Shown here: piece after piece, positions 22,801-63,430 of the stretch | Layout: each line of letters opens with the position of its first letter | Position numbering within the stretch: position 1 is the first letter of the stretch | Source: Dimorphilus gyrociliatus | Taxonomy: Eukaryota > Animalia > Annelida | Reading direction: 5' to 3' | DNA length: 64,000 nucleotides | Assembly: GCA_904063045.1 (NCBI GenBank) | Contig: CAJFCJ010000025.1 | Span: 496,001-560,000, forward strand | Program-made: the position numbers and the translations under genes | The notes under the pieces: model-generated | Told to the model about the DNA's origin: nothing | The model's database searches: none | The model's input: only the letters and a program-made list of their open reading frames with translations

Positions 22801-25800
22801 TTTTTAATAAGAAAACTCAAACTGTTTTACGAGAGATCGATGTTAAGAAAATTGACTCTAAAGTGATACAACAAAATATTGACGATGTCAAGCTGACAAC
22901 TATTAATAACGAAAAAATAACTGTAATTATTAATGCATATATATTTGTATATATACTAGTAATTATAGCTAATTAACTAATGTTATTATTAGGTGTTTGC
23001 CTCATCCGAACTTGATATCAGGGAAAAGACTACTTTCAAATTAACTTTGAAAACTCAAATACAAGAATCAGATAAACAAAAATTCGTTCAAGCAATAAAA
23101 GAAGCTGTTATCAGCAGTAATAAATTAGGTATATATTTATTTAGACTATTTAATTAACTATTTTAAATAACTAATTTTTGTTAATTAATCAAATATTTCA
23201 GTTTTATCTGAAAATACTACGTCTGCTATCTTTGATATATCTAAGGAAGAAATTACAAAATCAGGGTAATATATATAATCTACGTTATGAATATTCATGA
23301 AATGAATTACTAATTTTTTTTTTACAGAAAAATTGTTGCAACTGTTTCAATAACGGTAAAAAGAGATTCAAAAATATTCTCTTCTCAGGAAGCGGCTTTT
23401 AATATTTCTACAGTTGAAGAACTTTTATCAAATATAACAGTAACTGGTAAGGAAAAACGCATACAAAACTTATTAAATTCTCATAAAAATCCTCTAGTTA
23501 ATGAATATTTTTAATTTTTAATTAATAAGGTACCGACGAAAAGTTTAGCGACGTTTTATTAAGTGCCAAAGTAGCTATTGAACACCAAAATATAATAAAT
23601 AAAAAAGAGAATATTGAAATGGACAAACTACTTTCACTAACTGTAGACAAAACTCTTAAGATAAACGAAGAAAACAAATTAGCCGAAATTGTTAAGAAAC
23701 TTATTGTTAAAGAGAATACTAGTAAGTTAACTGGGAACTATGAATAAATTATGTAATTTAAGTATTAACACTATGCTCTTGCTTTATATTATTAGATATT
23801 GCAGAAGCAAATTTAACTGTTGAGGTTGTCAGACAAGAAAAAGTTATTGATAAAGCAACTAAGGAGACTAAGGTCAAAGTTAAATTGGCAATAAGAGTTA
23901 ATGGGAAAATAAAGGATGCTAGATTACTAAAGATATCCAAAGAAAAGATACAAGAAGAAATCAATAAGGAAAATTTGAATATTAACATTAAATCTATTGA
24001 CAAAGAGATAAGACTGGAAAAATGTATGAAGTTATTAATAAAAAATGTACCACTCGCAAACGAAGATGTTGATAAAGCAATTAAAACTCTACAAGATAGT
24101 CTTAGAGAGTCTGACGCAAAATATAAAGATGGTATCGTCACACTCTGCACAACTCGTCAAATAATAAATGAAAAATCGTAAGTTCAATGCTATTTCTCTC
24201 TCCTACCTTTCATTCTATCAATTAGTGTACGATATAATTAATAATCCTTTACTTTTATAGGGAAACATTAACGGAAATACTTTACGAAGTTTCCATAAAT
24301 AATAAAACTATTGTGCAATCTGTTGATAAAAAAACAATTATTAAGAATTTCAAAGAGAAGAAAACAATTAAGAAAGAAGAATTTAAATTGGTTATCCAAA
24401 ATGAAAAGACTGAGATTATCGATTTTGAAAGTACATTCAAACTTTATTCATTAAACATCTTTTCGAGGGCTAGTTATACTCAAATCATAGCTTCTATCAA
24501 TCAAGTATGGAAGACAAAACTTCAATCTGGTAAGATATTTATATATATATATATATTAATAATTAGTATTTCTATTAAACAAATTAATGTTATATTATTT
24601 ATTATTAGTTATGACGACAGACGTTGATTTTGATATCAAAATTACATCGTTTAATGAGGTATTTGAAAGGAAAGTGTAAGTATTATTTATTATTATTAGT
24701 AATATTATATATTAATGTAATGTTAATGAATTATTCATTATTAAGGAGTGGACCATTTAAAATTATCTACGAATATACATATACTTTGAGTAAAAAGACA
24801 ACGAAAGAGTTAATTTCTGCTCTAAGACTTGAAAAATTGACATCTAATGAGTTGGATGAAATATTTACATCCATCGATATATCATTCAAATTTACCGGAA
24901 ACGTTGAGAATCTTGTTTCAAAGATGAACCTATTCAAGTTAACTGTTAAACAATACGTTCTTGAAAGTCAATATACAATTCTACAAAATAAACTCGAAGA
25001 ATTTTGGTCCGAAGATTCAAGTTGTAAGTTACAAAATAATCAAAAAACTAATGAAACATTCTACTCGATAGTTAATTAATTGATTAATTAGTAATTTCTT
25101 TTTTAATTAATTTATAGTTAATAGTAAAGTGGCAACATTAAGAATCGTCCAACAGCAATACTTCTTAACTTCTGAAAGGGAAACTGTTAGCGTTCTGTTT
25201 ATACTAGCCACAGATAATTCAAACGCTATTATAAAATCTAAAGATTTCCCGAATTTCAATATTCAAGCTTTAACTATTAAATTTGAATCGTTAACTATAA
25301 GATCATCGAAAGGAACTAAATATCTTCTTATGGAAACTGACCAATCAAAATTAATTGAAAGGACAAAAGTCTATAAATTCTTACTAAAGAAATCAATTAA
25401 AATTGAATTTGTATCTTCATTAACAACTGAAATAAGAAAAGTATTTGTACAAATGAAGAAAGGTAAATATTTTCCATACTCTTTAATATATCAGTAATAA
25501 TTTTATTTTATTATTACAGGTATTGTTAGAGAAGAAGATATAAAAATTGAATTGCTGCAACAAGAGGAATACATTTCTGTCAGCGACAAGTAAGAAAGAA
25601 CTCATTCTTTATAAGAACTCATTATAATTAATTATATTTCGGTTAATTCTTTCTTTTGTTTTCTTTTTTAAGAACTACCGCTCTTGCTTCCAATTTCCTC
25701 GTACTTATAGCAGACAGCGTCCTAGATTCGAGACTTGATCTTATTACAGACTCAGATTTGGAAGATATCCTAACATCCATATCGGATTATAAAGATTCAT

Positions 25801-28800
25801 TAGTGAGAAAGATTGAAGAAGGAAACTATATACGTTTCGATAGTTTATTCACTATTCTTACTGAAGTTAGAGTAGAACAAACAACCGAAATTACGAATGA
25901 AATCAAAAAACATTGGCAAACCAACTTACAAAGTAAACATTTCTTTACTTGCATCTTTAACTAATTAATTATCCAAATAGAATATTCATGACATATTTTT
26001 AATAATTTGTATTTTCAGCCTATACAGTTGATAAACTGGAAATAATAACGCAAGAGGAGGTAATACTAGAAAAGAGGTATACAAACTATAAATCTATACA
26101 TACTGCATATAGCGTATATACAATATTTAATATATTGGGTATATTAACTTGGTATTTTTTGTATTTAGTTCTACTTTCGCTTTTGGCGTCTTTTATCTAG
26201 TAAAAACTGATAAAGAAACTCTAGACGCCAATAAAATTGACGTTAAATACACGAAATTACAAGAAATGATTAGCAAAGCTGAAATAATTTATCAAGGAAC
26301 AACTTACAAATATAAAATAGTTGAGATGGAATTATTCACAAGAACAACAGTGACAAAGACTATTCTTATTGAACGAGAAGAGATTGATAAGGTTGTAACC
26401 CTCTTATCTAATCTTTATCTTCTTCATCTTACTTTCCCCCGAAATAGGATAGCTACGAAGTAATTGAAAAATCTTTGGAAGAATCCTACAAAATATCTAA
26501 CAACTTTTTCGTAGATAAATCCATAGAGATTATCGTTAAAGATGAATATATTAGTCTACAAGGGTAAGACTGGATTATGATTTAAATACTATATAGTATG
26601 GACACAAATATCAATTATCATTATCTTCTTTTCCTTTTAGAATTTCGGTTATAAAACTCTTTTATAAAGTTTTACAAGAGAATAAAGTATCAATCCTAGC
26701 CGAATCATTTAATGAAATATCACATTCCGATATACAACAACAACTAAAGGAGTTTAAAGTCTTTACGTCAAATGACAAACTATTTAGATATAAGAAAAAG
26801 TTCTCGTTTGTACTTGAAAGATTCGTATTGAAAGATAACGTTGGTACCATTCAATTGAATTTGAATAAAGCTTGGGAGGCTAGATTACAAACGAATACTA
26901 TCTATTTCGTCAAACAAGAAGAAGTTCTTAACGATAACGGAAAGATATTTTATCAATCGTCCTATTTCGTTGAAAATACAGCAACAAATACAGTGCTAGA
27001 TTCGATTGTTTGGGGTGAATTGGAAGAAAATATCATAGAAGAAGCATTAGACGTTCAAGTTCAGAATTTACAAGATAAATATAAAGATTTTCTAGTAATT
27101 ACTTCAAATGCTACTGAATTAATAAGATGGAAAGACGCTTTTTCAATTATGACTATTGTAAAAATATCTAAACAATACCATGACGATATTAAGAGAGCTT
27201 TAACAAATATGTGGAGGAATATAAGGAAGTTATCAGTGGATATTCATATTTTCCCCAATAGCGAAAAATACGTTCAAGAATCTGGGAATATTATTCATAA
27301 ACTCTTTTATAAAGTTAAAGAGAGTTCAAAATTATTGAAAGCCAGTAACCTTGGTAATTTTGAAGATGGTGAAAATCAGGAAAATTTCAAAAATGTCATA
27401 GTTACAAATAATCAGCAATTATCGTCATTGGTTAGTTAAATTTATTTATATATTTATTAGAATAATTAATTAATTACTCTCCTTCTATCCTATTCATTCC
27501 CTTAGCTGTTCAAGTCAACCAGTGGAGAGTTGTATAGAATAAAGAGTACTTTTAATTTCCAATTATCGCGATCTATATTAAAAACTGATGAAGTTAACAT
27601 TAACACTCAGTTGCAAACTATATGGAAAGCTTCTAATTCCGGTAAATAATTTACTATTATTAGTAATAATCTCATTATTTTCTTTGTGAATTAATTAAAC
27701 AGAAGTTTCAACTGTAACGATTTTGGCCAGAGAAGAATTTATCATCAAATCTAATCTGGAATCTCTATATAAAATATATTATCTCGTTAAAACTGATAAT
27801 AAAATTTTAGACGCCGTTTTTAACAGTGATATAGAATCTCAAAAGGTAATAGAAGAGTAAAATATATATGATCTGTAAAAGTTCTCAACCAATTTATATA
27901 CTCTAATTGCAGATTAGAGACGCTCTTGATGCAGTAACAATTGGTCAAAGCTCTAATAAGTACTCGGAATTTTTCCAAACATATTTGGCATCTGAATTAA
28001 TACCTTTCGACGATTTAATGTCGTTAGCTCTTCGTCAAACTGTCATTAAGACTGATTATATTATATTGGAAGAGAAGTTGAAAGAAGCTTGGGTAAAGAA
28101 GACATCACTTTCGGATGTTGAAATAAAAATTGTAGGTCAAGAACGCTATACATTAGACAAGTAAGAATTGATGAATTTGTTTCTATTTTTTAATTATTAT
28201 TCATTGATTATTCCTCTCTCTCTCTCTCTCTCTCTCCATGAATAGATTATTTGTCTCCAAAATTCTATATACTTTTACCCGAAACCAAGTTATCTATACA
28301 CCAATCGATTTAGAGATGTTAACAAAAGTTGAATTATCAGCTATCGAGGAAATTGATAGTGCCAACGGAGAAAAGTATTCTATTATCGATTCGTCAGAGA
28401 ATTTAATTAGATTCAAGAAAGCCCAATTCATTTACCTTGATAATTATATTAAATTAAATCAAATGGATAAAATCATAGATATTATCTCAAACGTAATTCA
28501 AGATAATACAATCGAAATTCAGTTGGGTCCTTCGGAAGAATTTATCCATCCTACGTAAATATAAACAACAAATATAATCGTTTTATCAATGCTATACTTT
28601 TTATTATACACATTACAGAAAGAAAGTTATTATTCGATTGTCCTACTTTTCATTTATAAGTAACCTTGTTATTGATGGGCGTTTAAGACCTGCTCTATCT
28701 ACTCAAAGACTACAAACCGAACTCGATTCTCTTAAATTAAAGATTGTTGTTGATACAACAAATTATATTAACGAAGTACAAACAGCTACTTTAATGGTTA

Positions 28801-31351
28801 TTGGAATACCTAGTAGGACGGATAATAAAATCATTGCAGGTTTGCAAGCAGTTGCGTCCGGTCTGCTACCAGGATCAACTGCCGAAATTATAAATTATCA
28901 ACCATATATTAGTCAAACTGGATTAGAATTGACTGGAATTTTTTATAAAATTACCTTAAATGGTGAAATACAAAATCCTAAATTGTTGAAAATTCCTGAA
29001 ATATCTTCAGACGACGTCTATAAGGGAAAAGATGTTCTTAAACTGAATAAATTATATAAGTTATCCCTTACGGGTCTAATTTTAAATGGTGATACTCAAC
29101 AAATGATAAAGCAAGTAACATTTGTAGGATCTTGGACTGAATATTGTAAGCATTTATTATAGAAATGGAGCATATATTATTTAAATCTATTCTTCTTTCG
29201 CTTTTAGTACAAAAGAATAGACTGGATTTACAAATATCATTCTACAAAGCCGATGTTAATTTTGGTCTTTTTGGGTAAAACCAGTTTATTAATACTATTA
29301 TTAGAGATAAACTACTATAATCATAACGTCTTTCTTTTCCAGAGAAATCGTTACGAATGTATTATATTCAGTTGAATCGAATGGTTTTATTTATCATCCC
29401 GCTATTCAAGATCCTGTTCCAAAATCTACCAGTTTCCGTCAGGCAATAAAATCAATTGTACCAGTAAGTAATTTTTATATCATTTAATATCAAATATTAA
29501 TATATACGATACTTTTGTTACTTTCATTAGGAAACGAGCTTGTTCGATGAGAGTCGAACGCTAATAAGACGTGATAGAACATTTAGCCTTACTTTTGAAA
29601 GGACTTTAACAAGTGACGATATCGAAAAGATTACTAATGAATTACAAGCGAAATGGACGACAATTGAAGCCTTGGATGAATCGCCAAAGATTATTGGAAT
29701 TTCGGACAGAACTGATGAAACTATGGGGTAAATATACTATTGTTACATCTATAGAGAGAATCCTAATAACGCATGCTACTCGCTCTTTGTTTTTAGCAAA
29801 TCTATTGTTCAAGTTTATTACATTGTTAAGAAGAATGGTATTAACATTGAAGTTACTGATGTAGACGGTCCAACCGATTTACCATCGTTTCCCGCGTTCG
29901 ACCAACCAACTGTACCAGTTGAATCGTTATATATTTCGGGTAGAGTTAACGATTCATCTACTAATAATATTCAAACTGTATTGGAAACAACATGGCGAAG
30001 AGCGACAAATGTTAACGATTTGAAAGTTAAATTAACTTCTGTAAATTCAAAATTTACCTCTGTGGAATGGAAAAAAGTAACGCTAGTTAAATATGCGGTT
30101 GAATCTGAACAAAAAGGAACGCCTGGTAGAGATTCAATAGAAGGAGGATTAGGTACTTTTGGTTTAAGATTATGTAATTGCGTTGCCCAAAAGGAGAGAA
30201 AATTGGTTTTAAAAGCTGAGAGAGCAGACGTGGTGGAAAGTGTCGTATCAGAATCTATACAGGCTGCTTGGGAAAATAAGAATTCAGAGGTTAACGGTAC
30301 TTTCGAAGCCAAAATTAAGATAGACCAGAGTAGGAAAAAAAGAGCTGCTACTGGTGGCAGTGGCTTGACAGTTGATAATGGGTAAATATTGCAAAACTTG
30401 ATGATTTATATTGAATAGAATAGACAATATATTTATTGTTTTTCTTTTTCCTTTCCATTTTAGCACTGCAATAACTCCGATATCTGATCAAGTCACTTTA
30501 GATAGTATGCCTCCTCATCCTCTACTTATTAAAGAGCCTACACCTCAAGAGATTGACGATGAGCTAAAGAAACGATCCAATAATGTTGAAGTTTGCCACG
30601 GAGTTTGTAAACCAAAGATATGCAGATTTATGAACGTTAAGAAAACGGAATCTAATAATATTGAAGATGTTAAATTAGCTATTCAAGAAGCTTACGTTGA
30701 GGCTAATCCTGGAATGGAAAAATCAGATTTTGAGGTAGAAATAACACAAGTTCAAGAATTGCTGGATAGCAACGGGTTTGTAGATTAATAACATATTATG
30801 CAATAATTATATCTTCTATTATTTTTTATCGTAGATTAAGCTATTCTAAAGTTAATTATTGCGTATCGACAAAAGATGGATCAATTCCGCAAGAACCAAC
30901 AGACGAGCAGTTAAATAGGGCTCTTAAAAAATATGGCTTTGAACTGTTCGATGCAGAAGTTACAACCGAGAAACCTGGTGATGTAGTTGAAGAGGGAGAC
31001 GTAAATATACATTTATTTACCTTGTATATACAATATATATATATATATATATGTATTTATTATATTACATATAGCTAAAATGGATTATCACGGCTGGAGT
31101 ACTTTGCGGTTTATTCGCCTTAATCTTCTTAATTTTGGCTATTGTCAAAATTTGGATGAGATCGAAGTAAGTTTAAGGAAAAGGTATTTAAAAATCATAT
31201 TAATAATTTTCCTTTATAAAGACGTCTCCAAAGACAAAAATCAAGAGAACAAGATCGGGAATATTTACACGATGAAGAATTCTATCCAAAATCTAGAAAT
31301 GGTACTTTCGCAACTTATAATACTCTTCATTCAACAGCTAACTCCTCTTAA
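10864..31351 (+). CDS. Giant multi-exon type I transmembrane protein: signal peptide, EGF-like Cys domain, dozens of divergent SEA/ferredoxin-like modules of about 110-130 aa, TM helix, short cytoplasmic tail
   Basis: Exon 1 10864-10911 plus exon 2 11030-11139 give MILKAQWIFLIFYYLQWNSVVDG followed by an EGF (CKTVTGGFKCVCKSGFYGAYC). Every stretch I traced (11.0-13.1 kb, 14.9-17.3 kb, 30.8-31.35 kb) splices in frame. The ORF-track fragments from 11.8 to 30.8 kb share one repeat pattern. TM exon 31075-31166 encodes WIITAGVLCGLFALIFLILAIV; the tail ends ...STANSS* at 31349-31351. Not every junction was verified. Confidence 0.8.
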
Positions 31352-31569: not shown

Positions 31570-32502
31570 TTAGAGGCTGTCGTTTGCTTTAAGTAAAAGC
31601 ATCAATTTTCTCTGTAGATTCTCCTCTCTTCTCTGTTTTTCCTTTAGCAGTTCTTTTTCTATTAGTTGGTTTAATTCTCTGGAGAGTAAATCGTTTTCAG
31701 TTCGCTTGACTTGGTCCTCATTTCTATTGAAAAGGGAACTGTATTCGTTTTTCAGAGTATCTTTCTTGTCTTGTAATAATTGGCTATCTAGTCCCAAAGA
31801 TCGTAATTTGCTTAATTGCTTATCTTCCGTAAGCTTTTTCTTTGCTAGTTCTGCCTTACGTTCCTGTTTCAATTGACTTTTTAGATCGTTTAGGAGGTTA
31901 TCAAACTCCCTTAGGTCGTTTTGTTTTTTTGCTATTGCAGATTCTTTCTTTTCCTCTTTCACATCTTCGTTTTTCTTCTCTTGTTTCAAAGCGGATTCTT
32001 TATTTACAGTTTCACTCTTTTTAGCTACTGAATTCTTACTGTCTTCATTTTCGTGTAAAAATTTCTCTATTAAATTTCTAAGTTCGGAATCATCTTTAGA
32101 AATAGTCTTCTTCTCCTCTTGTTTTTCTTCCTCTTTCTTTTCAACTGGACTATTTTCCTCTTTTTTCACAGCTGTTTCGGCTTCCTTCTTTTCTGCAGTT
32201 TGACTTTCCGTCTTTTTCTCTGAATCTTCCTTTTTAACTTCCTCTTTACTGGTTAGTTCAGTTTTCTTTGCTGTTTTTTCACTTTCACTGTTGTCGGCGA
32301 GATTTAATTTTGCGATCAAACCTTCAATTTCTCTTAATACATTACTATCGTCATTACGTTTCAAAGTTGGTAGAAGATCTTCTTTATCATCGTAACGTTT
32401 CATTAATTCCAGCAAGTTTTCATCGCTTTCGGTTAAAGGTAGCGATTGAGTTTGATAGACAATGCAAAATGCAAGTAAAATCTTTAAAATCTTCGAAGAC
32501 AT
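31570..32502 (-). CDS. Single-exon secreted, highly charged granin/prohormone-like protein (310 aa)
   Basis: The ATG at 32502 (not the TTG at 32520 used by the track) starts a signal peptide MSSKILKILLAFCIVYQTQS. The mature region is Cys-free and E/K/D/L-rich, with several KR and many KK dibasic sites and repeated amphipathic motifs (LREIEGL, LRNLIEKF, LREFDNLL, LSRELNQL). Confidence 0.8.
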   Translation of the reverse strand: MSSKILKILLAFCIVYQTQSLPLTESDENLLELMKRYDDKEDLLPTLKRNDDSNVLREIEGLIAKLNLADNSESEKTAKKTELTSKEEVKKEDSEKKTESQTAEKKEAETAVKKEENSPVEKKEEEKQEEKKTISKDDSELRNLIEKFLHENEDSKNSVAKKSETVNKESALKQEKKNEDVKEEKKESAIAKKQNDLREFDNLLNDLKSQLKQERKAELAKKKLTEDKQLSKLRSLGLDSQLLQDKKDTLKNEYSSLFNRNEDQVKRTENDLLSRELNQLIEKELLKEKQRREENLQRKLMLLLKANDSL

Positions 32503-32690: not shown

Positions 32691-32754
32691 TCTCTCTCTC
32701 TCTCTCTCTTTCATTCATTCATTCATTCATTCATTCATTCATTCATTCATTCAT
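32691..32754. repeat. (CT)n followed by (TCAT)n microsatellite
   Basis: Directly visible. Confidence 0.9.
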
Positions 32755-33027
32755 TATTCCCTTTTTAACAATCATTCTACAGATAATTTTTAGAAAGAGT
32801 AGAAGAAGTATAAAAAATGAGTAGTTAATAATAAAATATTTATTAATAATTAATAAAATAAATATCTAATTAATGAATTATTTAAGTAATTTGAGTTTTA
32901 ATAGAAAGAATTAATGAAATAAAAACTAGGAAATTAGAGATGAAAATGAAAATATAATGTAAACAAGCCAATTGGAATTGTTTGAAACTGTATTTTTAGT
33001 TAAATAGATTAAGAATCTTCATCATTT

Positions 33028-33063
33028 TCTTCTTCTTCTTCTTCTTCTTCTTCTTCTTCTTCT
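33028..33063. repeat. (CTT)n trinucleotide microsatellite just downstream of the lyase gene
   Basis: Directly visible. Confidence 0.9.
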
Positions 33064-33164
33064 ATATAAAATGAAATGAAAAGAGAAATTATTAGAGTTG
33101 TTTTCTTTTACTTGTTTATTTATTTTATTTGTAAATTGAAATAACCTTGAACGGAAAAAAAAGG

Positions 33165-36099
33165 TCAAGAAAGAGTAAGATCGAGCGGAAATCCTTCGTC
33201 TAAGAATAAATTTAGGTGCATGTTCCCTTCATCATTTTTTTCTTGGGTGAAATGACAATATTCATTAATTGATGTCTGTTTAATATTCCATTTTCCTTTA
33301 ACAACCACTCTAGTAGATTGGATAGTTTCTTTATCATTGAATGAAAGTTTTGGTAAACAAAAGGTAACATTTACCAATTTTCCTTTATCTATCTCTTCCA
33401 TCATGATTAATAGTGGTGTTTCTATATATAAAAAGTAATCTATTTCTGTTGTAATCGGCGCAGAGAAAATACTTATAGCAATTATATTATCGACCTTTAT
33501 AACGTGTAAGGTATCAGTTTGATAAACGACTTTCCATAATTGGTGATAAGAAGATGATTTTATAGAGTGAATTGACGAATTTGGTATAATAATATATGAA
33601 AAATTATTGGATCTATTTTTAGAATGATCTAAATAAGCCAACAACTTTTTAGCTTTAGTAAAATTACCATTACCGGAATGATGCGGTGAAATTTGTTCTG
33701 AATGTTTTACGCATAAATGATTACCTTCGGAAAGAATATATCCAGTTGAGAAATTATCTAAAATCCAATATCCTTCTCCATTCCATTCTTTCTTTAATTT
33801 TTCATCATTTACTATCACATTTTCGCCATTTAAATCCAATTGAAAAATTGTCGTTACCAATTGATGATTGTGCTTAAAATATAAATTTGTTACAACTACG
33901 AAAATCTTTCCGTCAATTGCAATTACGCTCTTTCTAAATGTAAAATAGTCATTTTTCTCATAATTTTCCCCTTCATTTTGACGAAAATCCATTGCGAACA
34001 TACCAACTTCTCCGTGTTGATCTACCCTACCCAGAATACTATTTCCTATTGATTTAAATCTTAACGAGCCAACAAAGTCGTAATCTTTATATAGATATTC
34101 ATCGTATCTCTGACTATTTGGATTTAATTGATGAAATGGTAACACTTTTGTTGTTGTTCCTGGTACAAAATTCCAATTGAAACCTTCTATAGAATGTCCA
34201 TTCTCTCTATTTATATATCGTAGATCTATAGAACCGTAACTTTGATATTTACCAAATCTGTTCTCGTTGGGATAGATTTCCGCACCCCATAGTTTTGAGG
34301 TTAGGCCTAGTGTTTGGATTGGATAAAAAACATGATTATTAGATACGTTCCTATCAAAAACTAAGGTTCGAATGTTAAGAGAATAAAAGGTTCTGCTTAG
34401 GAAAAAAATGTAAATATTCAATTAAAGACTAAGAACCTTGATTCTCTTGGGAAAAACCTTTAATTGTAATCGCCCAATCGTCTTTCCTATAGATAGCCAA
34501 AGGTCCGTAATTTACTTGCCAAAATCCTTCTTCTGGTCTATACTTGAGAAATGGAAAGCTATTATTTGTCAAGGTAAGATTATTATAGGCCATCGCTAAT
34601 TCTCTATCAAATTGATTATCTCCATAGATGTCTCCTCTTAAATAGACCAAACGCTTTATAGACCATCCTGGTAATATTTGATAGGCATTGAAAGGATAAC
34701 GTCCGCAAAGACCATTCGAGAATTTCTCATTAACGCATAACACTAGTATTAAATATACAGTTTTCTTTAATTGTTCATAGCCTGTGGGTTTTATTTGGAA
34801 GTTTGTTGATTTTAGTGTATCAAGAGCATTAATTAATTCCTTTAAGGCATATAAATAATGAGGATAGAAAGTAGAATGGTGAAAGCACGTATTGTCAACT
34901 TTAAAACCATCGCATCTTCCTTTAGACTTAATGAGAAACTTTTCAAAATAAACCTTTGTTAATTTCATTGCCCGAATTCTTTCTTCATTCGTTTCATATA
35001 GGAAAACATTTTTCGTTATTAATTGCACGCAACCAACGTAGATTTTATCTGTACTTATATTAGAATAACTATGCGGATCTCTTATTCCTATATGTTCGTG
35101 AATCCAATACAGCATATCGGATAGTTTAGTTCTTAACTCTTCTGTAAGTTTATCGGCAATTAAGCAAATAGCTGGGGCGAAGTCTCTGAAAGAGTATGCA
35201 AATTTAATATCACTACTAAACCTATTATGACTCCCATAAGCAACGCCTTGATCTAGAATATGCTTTGCTAATACAACAAATCTATTTAAGATATTTTTAT
35301 CATTCGTGTGATAGATATATTTTGAGAATATTGACAAGATTTTTTGAATTTCATTCAAGTTATCGCCCGTTATTCTCTTGCCGCAAAGTCCATCTGCCGT
35401 CTCTTTTATCTTGTATTTAGCAAAATTAGCAATTTGTTCATCAACTAATTGCTTAGATGGGGCCATTTTACCGCTTAAAATGGGTAATAGTTTCCCTTTA
35501 ATAATAAACAAACTATCTAAATCGTTTTTACAAGCTTCTTCTAATGGTATAGACCAGGAAGCAAATTGTTCTTTTGCCCTATCCTCATCCGAATAATAAC
35601 CTCTTATTCCAGGATTATACGGTGTCCTAAATCGTTTCTGTCTTTCCTTAACCCATTGGATATTATCAATAAATATACAACCCCGAACATTTGTCTTACA
35701 TTCTATTAGAACGTGGTAGATATCATCCGACCTCCGATCTCCTACTATTTCTGTATCGTATTTGTAGCTACGTAAAACTTTACGCCATCCTTTGAAATTG
35801 AGTAGAATTGAGAAAGAATGAAGAATATTCATAGATTCACTTAAGAATTTAATAATTAATTGGCAATGTGTGTCATTTGAAAAATCGCTATCATTATATA
35901 TATCCATTGAGAAGGTATGCCAATAAAAATTTAGTATTTTATCCTTATCTATATCAATATATTCAAAATAGAGACAACATTCACCATTAAACTCCCATTT
36001 TAACGAAGAATTACATGATAAATATTTCTCTTTACTTATTTTACAAGATGAATTGAAATATTTCAAATTTTGCGGTATTCCACTATCGAAATTTAACAT
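33165..36099 (-). CDS. Polysaccharide lyase family 8, chondroitin sulfate ABC lyase-like, 2 exons, 927 aa
   Basis: Exon 1 36099-34458, GT-AG intron 34457-34307 (151 nt, phase 1), exon 2 34306-33165. Splicing gives ITIKG/LTSKLWGAEIYPNENRFGKYQSYGS, collinear with the chondroitinase ABC motif VTLKAYNTNVWSSEIYNKDNRYGRYQSHG as I recall it. The N-terminal FDSGIP...ISKEKY...SLKWEF resembles Lyase_N. Catalytic motifs: FHHSTFYPHY, LCGRYPF, WGAEIY. GFNWNFVPGTT and MFAMDF...FRKSVIAIDGKIF are typical of the PL8 central domain. Confidence 0.93.
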
Positions 36100-36993
36100 A
36101 TTCTTATTTTACTTCTTTCGCTAAATGACTTTTTTATGTTGGAATATTAACCTTTTTTTTTGTTTTTATATGACCTAGTTTTAAAAAGTATATAACGTTC
36201 TTAATTAACATTCATATGAAGGACGGAGAAGGCAAAAAACAGTAAACTGATCGAGTTATGCTTCATTGTATCCAAAGTATTCTACTATTTCACTATACAT
36301 TTCCTATAACACATTGCATAAAGCATATATAGTATACTAAACATAGTATATAACTACTCTTCGTCCTTAAAATTCGGTAATTACAGTCTAGTCATTCCTC
36401 TCTCTTACATATTTATTTATAAATATTACTTTTTATGTAAACTGGAAAATTTGAACATTCAATTTTATCAGATTATGCAGTATGAATAGTGAAAAGATAA
36501 AAAACAGTTCAAACGATACGGAAGGAATAAAGGTTTTAAGTTTAAGGGAAACAAGAACATCTTAGAGAGAATAGAAACAAAATGTCTCTCGTACTTAGAA
36601 GATAAAGATAGAAAGAAAGAAACAAGTAAATGCGTCGGTGTATATGTCATTAATAATGAAAATGTCTCTAATTAGAAAAGAGAGCAAGAAAAATAAACTA
36701 AGTGTATAACGCTAATTTCTACCCTTTTCCAGCATTCCCTTATATCTATATATAGTGTGTATGTATAGTATACAGTATATATATTTCGTATTTGTAAATG
36801 TACATACACTTTATGTGCAGTACGCAGTGTTCGGTGAAAAACAAGAAAAAGTGCAATCGATGCATATTTTCTCATGCGTCACTCTTCCCTTTCTTCTCCT
36901 AATCAGTCAGTAGACATTTCTTTTTACTATCAATAATTATTTTGTTTATTATAAAAGGTTTGAAATTTATGTAAGTTATATTTTTAGAATAAA

Positions 36994-37034
<41 letters not shown>

Positions 37035-62519: not shown

Positions 62520-63430
62520 TCATTTTTCAATATGTCTGGAGGTATAATGACGAGCAATCTGAGGTTCAGTTCCTGAAAAGTACAAGTACGAACATATAAA
62601 ATTTACTTAAAGGAATCTCCCAAAGCTTATTAAATATTTATACTACTTTAAAGCTAAATTTATAGACTAATTCAATTTAAAAAATAGGTTTCATCAGCCA
62701 AACTCTTCTCCGTTTACTTTATAAGATTTTGAGTGCGTTTTAGTTTTTTTTACAAGCTTACTTTATGCTGTCGTAGTGTACTATACATTTAAAATCTTCT
62801 TAATCACTTGTATGTCAGTTTTTACTATAAGTATTCTCATATACAGAAGTATGAATATATACATATATACTGTATATATCTATATATATATATATTAAAA
62901 TGTAACATCTTGTTATAAAAAAATAATATTCCTTACCCACAAAATACTTTTCTATAGCCTCAATTCCTTTCTTACACACTTCAATTGGTGGATGTTCAAG
63001 GGGATTATCATCAACGCAAACGGAGAATGTGTGAACATTACCCCATTGTAATTTCTTCAGTCTCGCAAAATGCCTTGGTAAACGTCTTAGACGATTATTA
63101 CCGACCCATAAATCTTCTAAATTAATGAGGTCGCATATAGAGTCCGGTAGGTGGCGCAGAATATTAACGTGTAATAAGAGATTTTGCAGGCTACGCATGC
63201 GAGAGATTCCTTCAGGAAGATCAGCTATGCGATTGTTGCATAGATCTAGGAATTCTAAATCTCTTAGATTGCACAGAGAATTCAGAAAGACATCTATATA
63301 ATTATTACAGGCATGTAGTGATTTTAGTCTCGATAGATTGCCTAGTCCTTCCGGTAACTTTTTTAAGTGGTTGTTACTGATTGATAGTTTTTCCAAATTA
63401 CTTAATAGGCCTATCTCTTCGGGGATTTCG
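62520..63430 (-). CDS. Leucine-rich-repeat protein, 3' part (5' exons not found; probably beyond the window)
   Basis: Exons 63430-62937 and 62572-62520. At least six LxxLxLxxNxL-type repeats, then the C-cap DNPLEHPPIEVCKKGIEAIEKYF as seen in LRRC30/LRRD1/MFHAS1-like LRR proteins, and a short tail GTEPQIARHYTSRHIEK*. Confidence 0.9.

Follow-up and report, generated by a model that had tools for sequence, protein, structure and literature searches.

We analysed a 64,000-nucleotide (nt) stretch of the genome of the annelid Dimorphilus gyrociliatus (assembly GCA_904063045.1, contig CAJFCJ010000025.1, positions 496,001 to 560,000; hereafter the window, in whose coordinates all positions are given) and found on its minus strand, between 33165 and 36099, a gene for a lyase of polysaccharide lyase family 8 (PL8), the family of the bacterial chondroitinases ABC. 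Very probably, this lyase gene is real, integrated into the host genome, under selection and of bacterial type.

The gene is spread over two open reading frames (ORFs) that lie in different frames, 34429-36099(-) of 556 amino acids (aa) and 33165-34421(-) of 418 aa. The 151 nt from 34307 to 34457(-) begin with GTTTTT and end with CACTAG, and their excision leaves 2784 nt, corresponding to 927 codons and a stop, with zero internal stops. In an alignment with the 12 best homologues, the resulting junction (ITIKG|LTSKLWGAEIY) is gapless, and the same holds against Proteus chondroitinase ABC I (1HN0, residues 640-655). HMMER aligned the 556-aa ORF to residues 360-646 of the Proteus enzyme and the 418-aa ORF, from its residue 3, to residues 647-986, so the two ORF pieces abut exactly. 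In the spliced lyase, residues 268-550 match 360-646 of Proteus ABC I, and the alignment is collinear across both exons. Open frames of 547 and 379 codons in DNA of 29% G+C are far beyond chance. Strong sequence logic argues for a spliceosomal-type intron in the lyase gene, which would be organised as follows:

34458..36099, minus strand: main exon, encoding residues 1-547 and the first base of Gly548, with Lyase_N and Lyase_catalyt (Pfam, PDB sequence matches to 2Q1F, 7EIP and 1HN0, AlphaFold2, Foldseek)
34307..34457, minus strand: intron, 151 nt, GT..AG, phase 1, with an in-frame stop inside and a frame shift; junction gapless once it is removed
33165..34306, minus strand: last exon, encoding residues 548-927 and the stop, with the Lyase_8 beta-sandwich and the C-terminal part (Pfam, 647-986 of 7EIP/1HN0)
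33115..33129, minus strand: candidate polyadenylation signal, three overlapping AATAAA motifs 36-50 nt past the stop

The AATAAA cluster would be consistent with a eukaryotic 3′ end, such motifs being frequent in AT-rich DNA.

The three-domain architecture of the chondroitinase-ABC-type lyases of CAZy family PL8 is present, with all domains above their Pfam gathering scores: Lyase_N (E value 1.6e-15, 57.8 bits) and Lyase_catalyt (1.9e-34, 119.9 bits) in the first ORF, and Lyase_8 (1.3e-16, 61.3 bits) in the second. An AlphaFold2 model of residues 1-547 reached a mean predicted local distance difference test score (pLDDT) of 89.9 and a predicted template modelling score (pTM) of 0.89, the C-terminal half being compared by sequence. 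The best Foldseek match of this model was 2Q1F, the ABC lyase of Bacteroides thetaiotaomicron (E 2.4e-30, TMq 0.82), followed by 7EIP/1HN0, the ABC I enzyme of Proteus vulgaris (TMq 0.75), and more distantly by AC, hyaluronate and xanthan lyases. The motifs HHSTFYPHY (residues 407-415), CGRYPF (465-470) and WGAEIY (554-559) hold His408, Tyr415, Arg467 and Glu557, which HMMER aligned to His501, Tyr508, Arg560 and Glu653 of 1HN0/7EIP, and none of these four catalytic columns varies among the 12 best homologues. Asp351 aligns to a further active-site residue, Asp398 of 2Q1F, which is listed as a charge neutraliser (PMC12088678). The codons concerned are:

34876..34878, minus strand: His408, matching His501 in Proteus ABC I and His454 in 2Q1F; no variation among 40 aligned homologues
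34855..34857, minus strand: Tyr415, equivalent to Tyr508 and Tyr461, respectively, by alignment
34699..34701, minus strand: Arg467, equivalent to Arg560 and Arg514 by alignment
34278..34280, minus strand: Glu557, equivalent to Glu653 and Glu628 by alignment
35047..35049, minus strand: Asp351, aligned to Asp398 of 2Q1F; column invariant in 40 sequences

Measured against 75 bacterial homologues, the lyase keeps 17 of 17 invariant columns, 35 of the 40 columns conserved at ≥95% and 51 of the 62 conserved at ≥90%, the lost ones being mostly conservative changes.

One active-site element of the characterised ABC lyases is missing. The site of the paired residues His344/His345 of 2Q1F is occupied in the annelid protein by a loop that contains no His-His:

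35188..35214, minus strand: loop SDIKFAYSF, at the site of His344/His345 of 2Q1F in characterised ABC lyases

Nowhere in the catalytic domain is the model less confident than at this loop (block 291-300, pLDDT 67). For one solved ABC lyase, 2Q1F, His345 is tabulated together with Tyr461 and His454 as a general base (PMC12088678). The His-His motif occurs in 17 of 19 aligned sequences on the Proteus/Cetobacterium side of the family tree described below and in none of the 56 sequences of the other group, as in the window lyase. His345 is reportedly (Shaya et al. 2008) the base that acts on the iduronate epimer. Given the absence of the motif, action on dermatan sulfate, and with it "ABC" specificity, is doubtful; we predict from the alignments an AC-like specificity for glucuronate linkages rather than true ABC specificity, with a glycosaminoglycan (GAG) substrate taken as an assumption.

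Most of what a first-pass annotation, made from the sequence letters, had said about the protein stands up to this analysis. It had joined the two ORFs through one 151-nt GT-AG intron into a 927-aa lyase, which the ORF coordinates, the splice ends and the gapless junction bear out, and it had named the HMMER search in advance as a check, in which all three PL8 domains exceeded the Pfam gathering cut-offs. Its catalytic tetrad is intact and aligned to the Proteus residues; of the Proteus spacing that it had also claimed, His408-Tyr415 (7 residues) and Tyr415-Arg467 (52 residues) are identical, whereas Arg467 and Glu557 are 90 residues apart versus 93 in Proteus. The name "chondroitin ABC lyase" is the part that finds no support as worded: the protein lacks the His-His motif and is by similarity nearer to an uncharacterised, largely Bacteroidota-type group (E 1e-74) than to the enzymes of Proteus, B. 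thetaiotaomicron and Cetobacterium (E 1e-19 to 1e-24).

An exhaustive HMMER search of 1.84 billion representative proteins returned 410 homologues, with a best E value of 1.6e-74. The nearest proteins are ∼31% identical, and none exceeds 34% among the 150 best matches listed. The three lyase domains are present in all 34 nearest homologues; 13 of these also carry Por_Secre_tail and five PATR repeats, while others have bacterial Ig, cadherin-like or carbohydrate-binding module (CBM) domains. Among individual sequences, P0068 lies between bacterial genes in a metagenome-assembled genome (MAG) of Chitinophagales, P0069 and P0071 end in sorting tails of the type IX secretion system (T9SS), and the P0102 cluster includes Parapedobacter. 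All close homologues that could be traced by gene neighbourhood or accessory domains were bacterial, with the exception of P0236, which is described below. A search of reference genomes for a taxon-labelled tree yielded one locus, in a Chitinophagales MAG. In a tree of 76 sequences, the lyase falls into a group of 57 that is split with 100% support in the Shimodaira–Hasegawa-like approximate likelihood ratio test (SH-aLRT) from a clade of 19 containing Cetobacterium enzymes; on the grounds of PDB scores, length and motif, we place the characterised ABC lyases on the side of this clade. The evidence for a bacterial origin of the lyase is good, and the donor may plausibly have been Bacteroidota-like. 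Looking for further eukaryotic relatives in metagenome contigs of JGI and in IMG/VR, we found no relative. The most identical fragment (P0105, 34%) was considered as a eukaryotic relative and rejected, as its contig has 41-47% G+C and its protein a lipoprotein-like start. On that contig (L008, Logan ERR6349568), one frame spans the whole 1.77 kb and is broken only by in-frame TAGs at 392-394 and 1547-1549; these may be sequencing errors, or may point to an organism or element in which TAG is a sense codon.

P0236, retrieved with the last exon as query, is 66-67% identical across all 379 residues and is carried on short genomic Logan contigs of other sequencing runs, with 26% G+C. We read three such contigs (L005-L007), which come from the runs SRR23372216, SRR23372229 and SRR23372231. 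The runs that carry P0236 did not yield the ORF of the window itself, so they represent a different organism. In all three contigs, the lyase exon begins at the same CTAG|G acceptor, upstream of which lies non-coding sequence with a (GA)n microsatellite. The similarity extends to the gene downstream of the lyase in the window:

31570..32502, minus strand: downstream neighbour of 310 aa, rich in Lys/Glu, with several KR pairs and a start resembling a signal peptide; synteny marker

Indeed, ∼0.9 kb downstream of the lyase exon in L005 (2275-2613) and on the same strand, there is an ORF homologous to the N-terminal part of this neighbour (E 6e-11). No Pfam match was found for the 310-aa protein, which may be secreted and acidic or propeptide-like. 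Comparison of the two loci shows, at the level of sequence, that the lyase gene, its intron acceptor and the neighbour are older than the split of the two lineages, and the recurrence in a second genome likewise shows that the arrangement is not an assembly artefact. Between the last exon in the window and that in L005 (376 aligned codons, both copies open), the rate of nonsynonymous change (dN) is 0.22 and that of synonymous change (dS) 1.2 by NG86, or 0.20 and 0.84 by LWL85, giving a dN/dS of ∼0.18-0.24. Identity at codon positions 1, 2 and 3 is 76, 85 and 57%, respectively. These codon-level estimates show purifying selection on the last exon.

The surroundings of the gene are those of an animal chromosome. 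G+C content is 25-33% from end to end of the window and 30-32% in the lyase gene; G+C at third codon positions (GC3) is 0.23-0.27 in the lyase, 0.20-0.32 in the other coding ORFs of the window and 0.28-0.38 in the bacterial relatives. The AT bias and short introns of the window agree with the D. gyrociliatus genome paper (PMC7854359). A thrombospondin-type gene with TSP1, EGF_CA and the start of TSP_C lies 24 kb from the lyase on the same contig (8149-9374(+)), and an ORF at 62815-63396 encodes leucine-rich repeats. The linkage of the lyase to animal genes is provided by the assembly and by the second, separately assembled locus. The repeats around the lyase are solely microsatellite-based, and we rejected an origin as, or as cargo of, a transposon:

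33016..33063, minus strand: (GAA)16 microsatellite, downstream of the lyase
32710-32759: (TGAA)n microsatellite, flanking the lyase
36999-37032: (TA)17 microsatellite, flanking the lyase

The 2.8 kb that code for the lyase are interrupted by one intron, or by two. On the plus strand, a long multi-exon gene at 24300-30800(+) is split into blocks of ∼85-203 codons. By eye, these blocks appear to repeat a module with a conserved Trp near its end (…AWE…, …MWRN…, …AWV…); no Pfam match was found for the two blocks that were searched.

Whether a second intron is counted depends on the 5′ end of the gene. The lyase ORF starts two residues ahead of the point at which the bacterial Lyase_N begins, and the bacterial homologues have ∼20 leader residues before the position matching this start. 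Without splicing, the ORF cannot extend further upstream, as a TAA stands in frame at 36109-36111. The closest hydrophobic peptide on that side that begins with ATG would give the following arrangement:

36210..36266, minus strand: putative 5′ exon encoding a 19-aa signal-peptide-like leader, MKHNSISLLFFAFSVLHMN
36103..36209, minus strand: putative first intron, 107 nt, GT..AG, phase 0, in which the GT donor after AAT pairs with the AG acceptor at 36103-36104

Joined in phase to the ORF, this leader yields a predicted precursor of 947 aa. Because further hydrophobic mini-ORFs are present upstream of the lyase, the leader exon is hypothetical; a signal-peptide exon ahead of the lyase ORF is possible on the basis of these coordinates. 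Furthermore, the lyase has 18 cysteines, compared with a median of four among the bacterial homologues, a number that would fit an exported eukaryotic secretory protein.

The first-pass annotation had described the gene as AT-rich like its surroundings and flanked by host-type microsatellites, which the G+C profile and the (GAA)16, (TGAA)n and (TA)17 repeats confirm, and had concluded that it is a domesticated, horizontally acquired gene. For the latter speak the bacterial type of the protein, its place on an animal chromosome, the intron, the tetrad, and selection as seen in the 67% identical copy with the same acceptor and neighbour (dN/dS ∼0.18); the identity of the donor is the part that the tree does not fix. 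Several observations count against our interpretation. The lyase sits on a branch of 1.7 changes per site, against a median of 0.53, and in the approximately unbiased (AU) test on a reduced set of 36 sequences, its grouping with the characterised ABC clade was not rejected (p 0.195); as a consequence of both, the tree fixes neither donor nor subgroup. Contigs L005-L007, although assembled separately, all break in the same (GA)n within the intron (first 60 bases), so the first exon of the relative was not recovered. Neither a self-match nor a transcript fragment was found in a collection of 5.8 billion proteins queried with the 556-aa ORF and, separately, with the final 160 residues encoded by the main exon, and the exhaustive search of representatives likewise gave no self-match or transcript-derived protein. 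Splicing, expression and the 5′ exon are consequently argued from sequence logic. Finally, the role assigned to His345 draws on one paper's table and on what Shaya et al. 2008 reportedly found. A protein matching the lyase gene was not found in a collection of 15 billion proteins either, and the public annotation of the genome may lack the gene. Six ORFs of the window, looked up by exact sequence, were likewise all absent from the protein collection.

How do other explanations fare? That the lyase comes from a bacterium living with the animal, through contamination or a chimeric assembly, might be suspected from a family that is overwhelmingly bacterial and from the fairly AT-rich genes of some Bacteroidota relatives (36-41% G+C). 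Yet a bacterial gene would be broken by a frame-shifting GT..AG insert of 151 nt whose removal restores a gapless alignment, no bacterial protein is >34% identical among the 150 best matches listed, the flanks are microsatellite-rich and of animal type with a thrombospondin-type gene on the contig, and the same arrangement recurs in separately sequenced and assembled runs, apparently from another species. We therefore regard this explanation as extremely improbable. A transferred gene that has since lost its function would account for the very long branch, the lack of any transcript-derived protein in the protein collections, and a gene that may be absent from the public annotation and has no self-match. 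Such a decaying relic would not be expected to retain 927 open codons in DNA of 29% G+C, all 17 invariant columns and the tetrad, nor to show a dN/dS of ∼0.18 relative to a copy that is itself open across 379 codons, and the model folds with high confidence; we consider it very unlikely. The case for old vertical inheritance, in which a PL8 gene of ancestral eukaryotes or animals would have been lost from nearly all lineages, can point to choanoflagellate genes for chondroitin sulfate lyases, one of which is reported not to be unique to that lineage (PMC7971027), to the lack of an organism name for most of the 410 homologues and to the unfixed position of the window lyase in the tree. It is opposed by the bacterial nature of all traced close homologues, with P0236 as the only eukaryote-type relative found, by an exhaustive search in which nothing among the best 150 matches is >34% identical, and by the one or two introns in 2.8 kb, versus a plus-strand neighbour cut into blocks of 85-203 codons. 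Descent of this kind appears, like a relic, very improbable.

A different alternative leaves the acquired, active lyase in place and concerns only the GAG part of the first interpretation: the enzyme may act on dietary microbial or algal acidic polysaccharides rather than on animal GAGs. The nearest bacterial group is uncharacterised and lacks the ABC-type second histidine, no adjacent sulfatases or unsaturated glucuronyl hydrolases were present at the three loci of this group that we read in detail, and PL8 also includes xanthan and hyaluronate lyases, which are among the fold matches. On the other hand, the closest solved structures and the best Pfam models are those of chondroitinase ABC, and enzymes acting on chondroitin use the same AC-type tetrad and neutralising Asp. 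A non-GAG substrate is a substantial possibility, somewhat less likely than not.

Returning to a selected, host-integrated gene of bacterial type, which we take to be a functional gene of the animal, we propose the following history and function. The ancestor would have been a bacterial PL8 lyase with chondroitinase-ABC architecture, composed of an N-terminal beta-sandwich, an alpha/alpha toroid and a further beta-sandwich. After transfer, the gene would have adopted the base composition of the host and gained at least one spliceosomal intron. As the comparison of the two loci shows, it already stood beside the same neighbour in the common ancestor with the relative, and purifying selection has acted on it since. 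The protein would be exported, probably by means of the short putative signal-peptide exon ∼110 nt upstream. It would cleave hexosaminyl-glucuronate linkages by beta-elimination using an AC-type machinery, in which Asp351 and Arg467 may neutralise or position the carboxylate, Tyr415 and His408 abstract and donate the proton, and Glu557 provides support. Since the second histidine base is absent, activity is expected on glucuronate polymers, with little or none on dermatan sulfate. Candidate substrates are hyaluronan, chondroitin 4-/6-sulfate or a comparable glucuronan from microbes or algae. The most likely role would be extracellular, in the digestion of food-derived or mucus polysaccharides or in the remodelling of matrix or cocoon.

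To our knowledge, animals have not been known to make a PL8-type lyase, and eliminative breakdown of GAGs has so far been ascribed to microbes and some viruses only. GAG degradation in animals is thought to use hydrolases. If our interpretation is correct, an endogenous beta-eliminase under selection would give an animal a new route of catabolism or remodelling and would lengthen the short list of well-supported acquisitions of bacterial enzymes in annelids. More far-reaching, and to be held tentatively as a rather doubtful proposition, is that the animal itself produces and exports an eliminative lyase for matrix polysaccharides that contain glucuronate, that this lyase is already adapted to the eukaryotic secretory pathway and that its parent group may hold an undescribed PL8 specificity. 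In experiments on spinal cord injury, bacterial chondroitinase ABC serves to dissolve the proteoglycans of the scar, but the enzyme lacks stability, and its secretion by mammalian cells was achieved only after re-engineering. If the annelid gene encodes a version evolved for eukaryotic secretion, this would be of practical interest for such use. The missing second histidine furthermore gives a sharp, testable prediction of specificity (chondroitin and hyaluronan yes, dermatan sulfate no), which extends to a large uncharacterised group of bacterial PL8 enzymes.

Among known systems, the ABC lyase of B. thetaiotaomicron (2Q1F) shares with the window lyase the three-domain architecture, the FHH...Y motif, the Arg, the Glu and the equivalent of Asp398, and is its best structural match. 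At ∼18-25% identity, the window lyase differs from it in lacking His344/His345 and a leader in the same exon, and in having an intron and 18 cysteines. Proteus vulgaris ABC I (1HN0, 7EIP) aligns collinearly, with the tetrad matched and the same His-Tyr and Tyr-Arg spacing. It reaches E values of only 1e-15 to 1e-19, has an Arg before the catalytic His where the window lyase has a His, and carries the His-His loop motif that the latter lacks. The Bacteroidota-type PL8 proteins with T9SS tails (P0068, P0102 cluster) come closest, with E values of 1e-74, 29-32% identity over the full length, no His-His and a gapless junction. Unlike the window lyase, which is a bare core ending at model position 931/932, they start with a bacterial signal peptide and carry sorting or adhesin domains at the C terminus.

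In the literature covered, which is an incomplete selection, we came across no PL8 lyase of the ABC type described from an animal genome, and transfers are not a topic of the D. gyrociliatus genome paper (PMC7854359). For the choanoflagellate Salpingoeca rosetta, candidate horizontally acquired genes for chondroitin sulfate lyases have been described, with a proposed bacterial origin (PMC7971027). These resemble the annelid gene, by description rather than by sequence, in being encoded by a eukaryote, in their proposed origin and in addressing matrix-type polysaccharides, whereas their host is a protist. Invertebrates have also acquired bacterial carbohydrate-active enzymes, such as the pectate lyases and cellulases of plant-parasitic nematodes and of beetles. 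These acquisitions parallel the annelid lyase in that a bacterial enzyme has taken on the composition of its host, introns and, probably, a secretion signal of eukaryotic type, and differ from it in enzyme family and target. The presence of bacterial carbohydrate-active enzymes in invertebrates is thus a known type of event; it is the class of enzyme that is unexpected in an animal.

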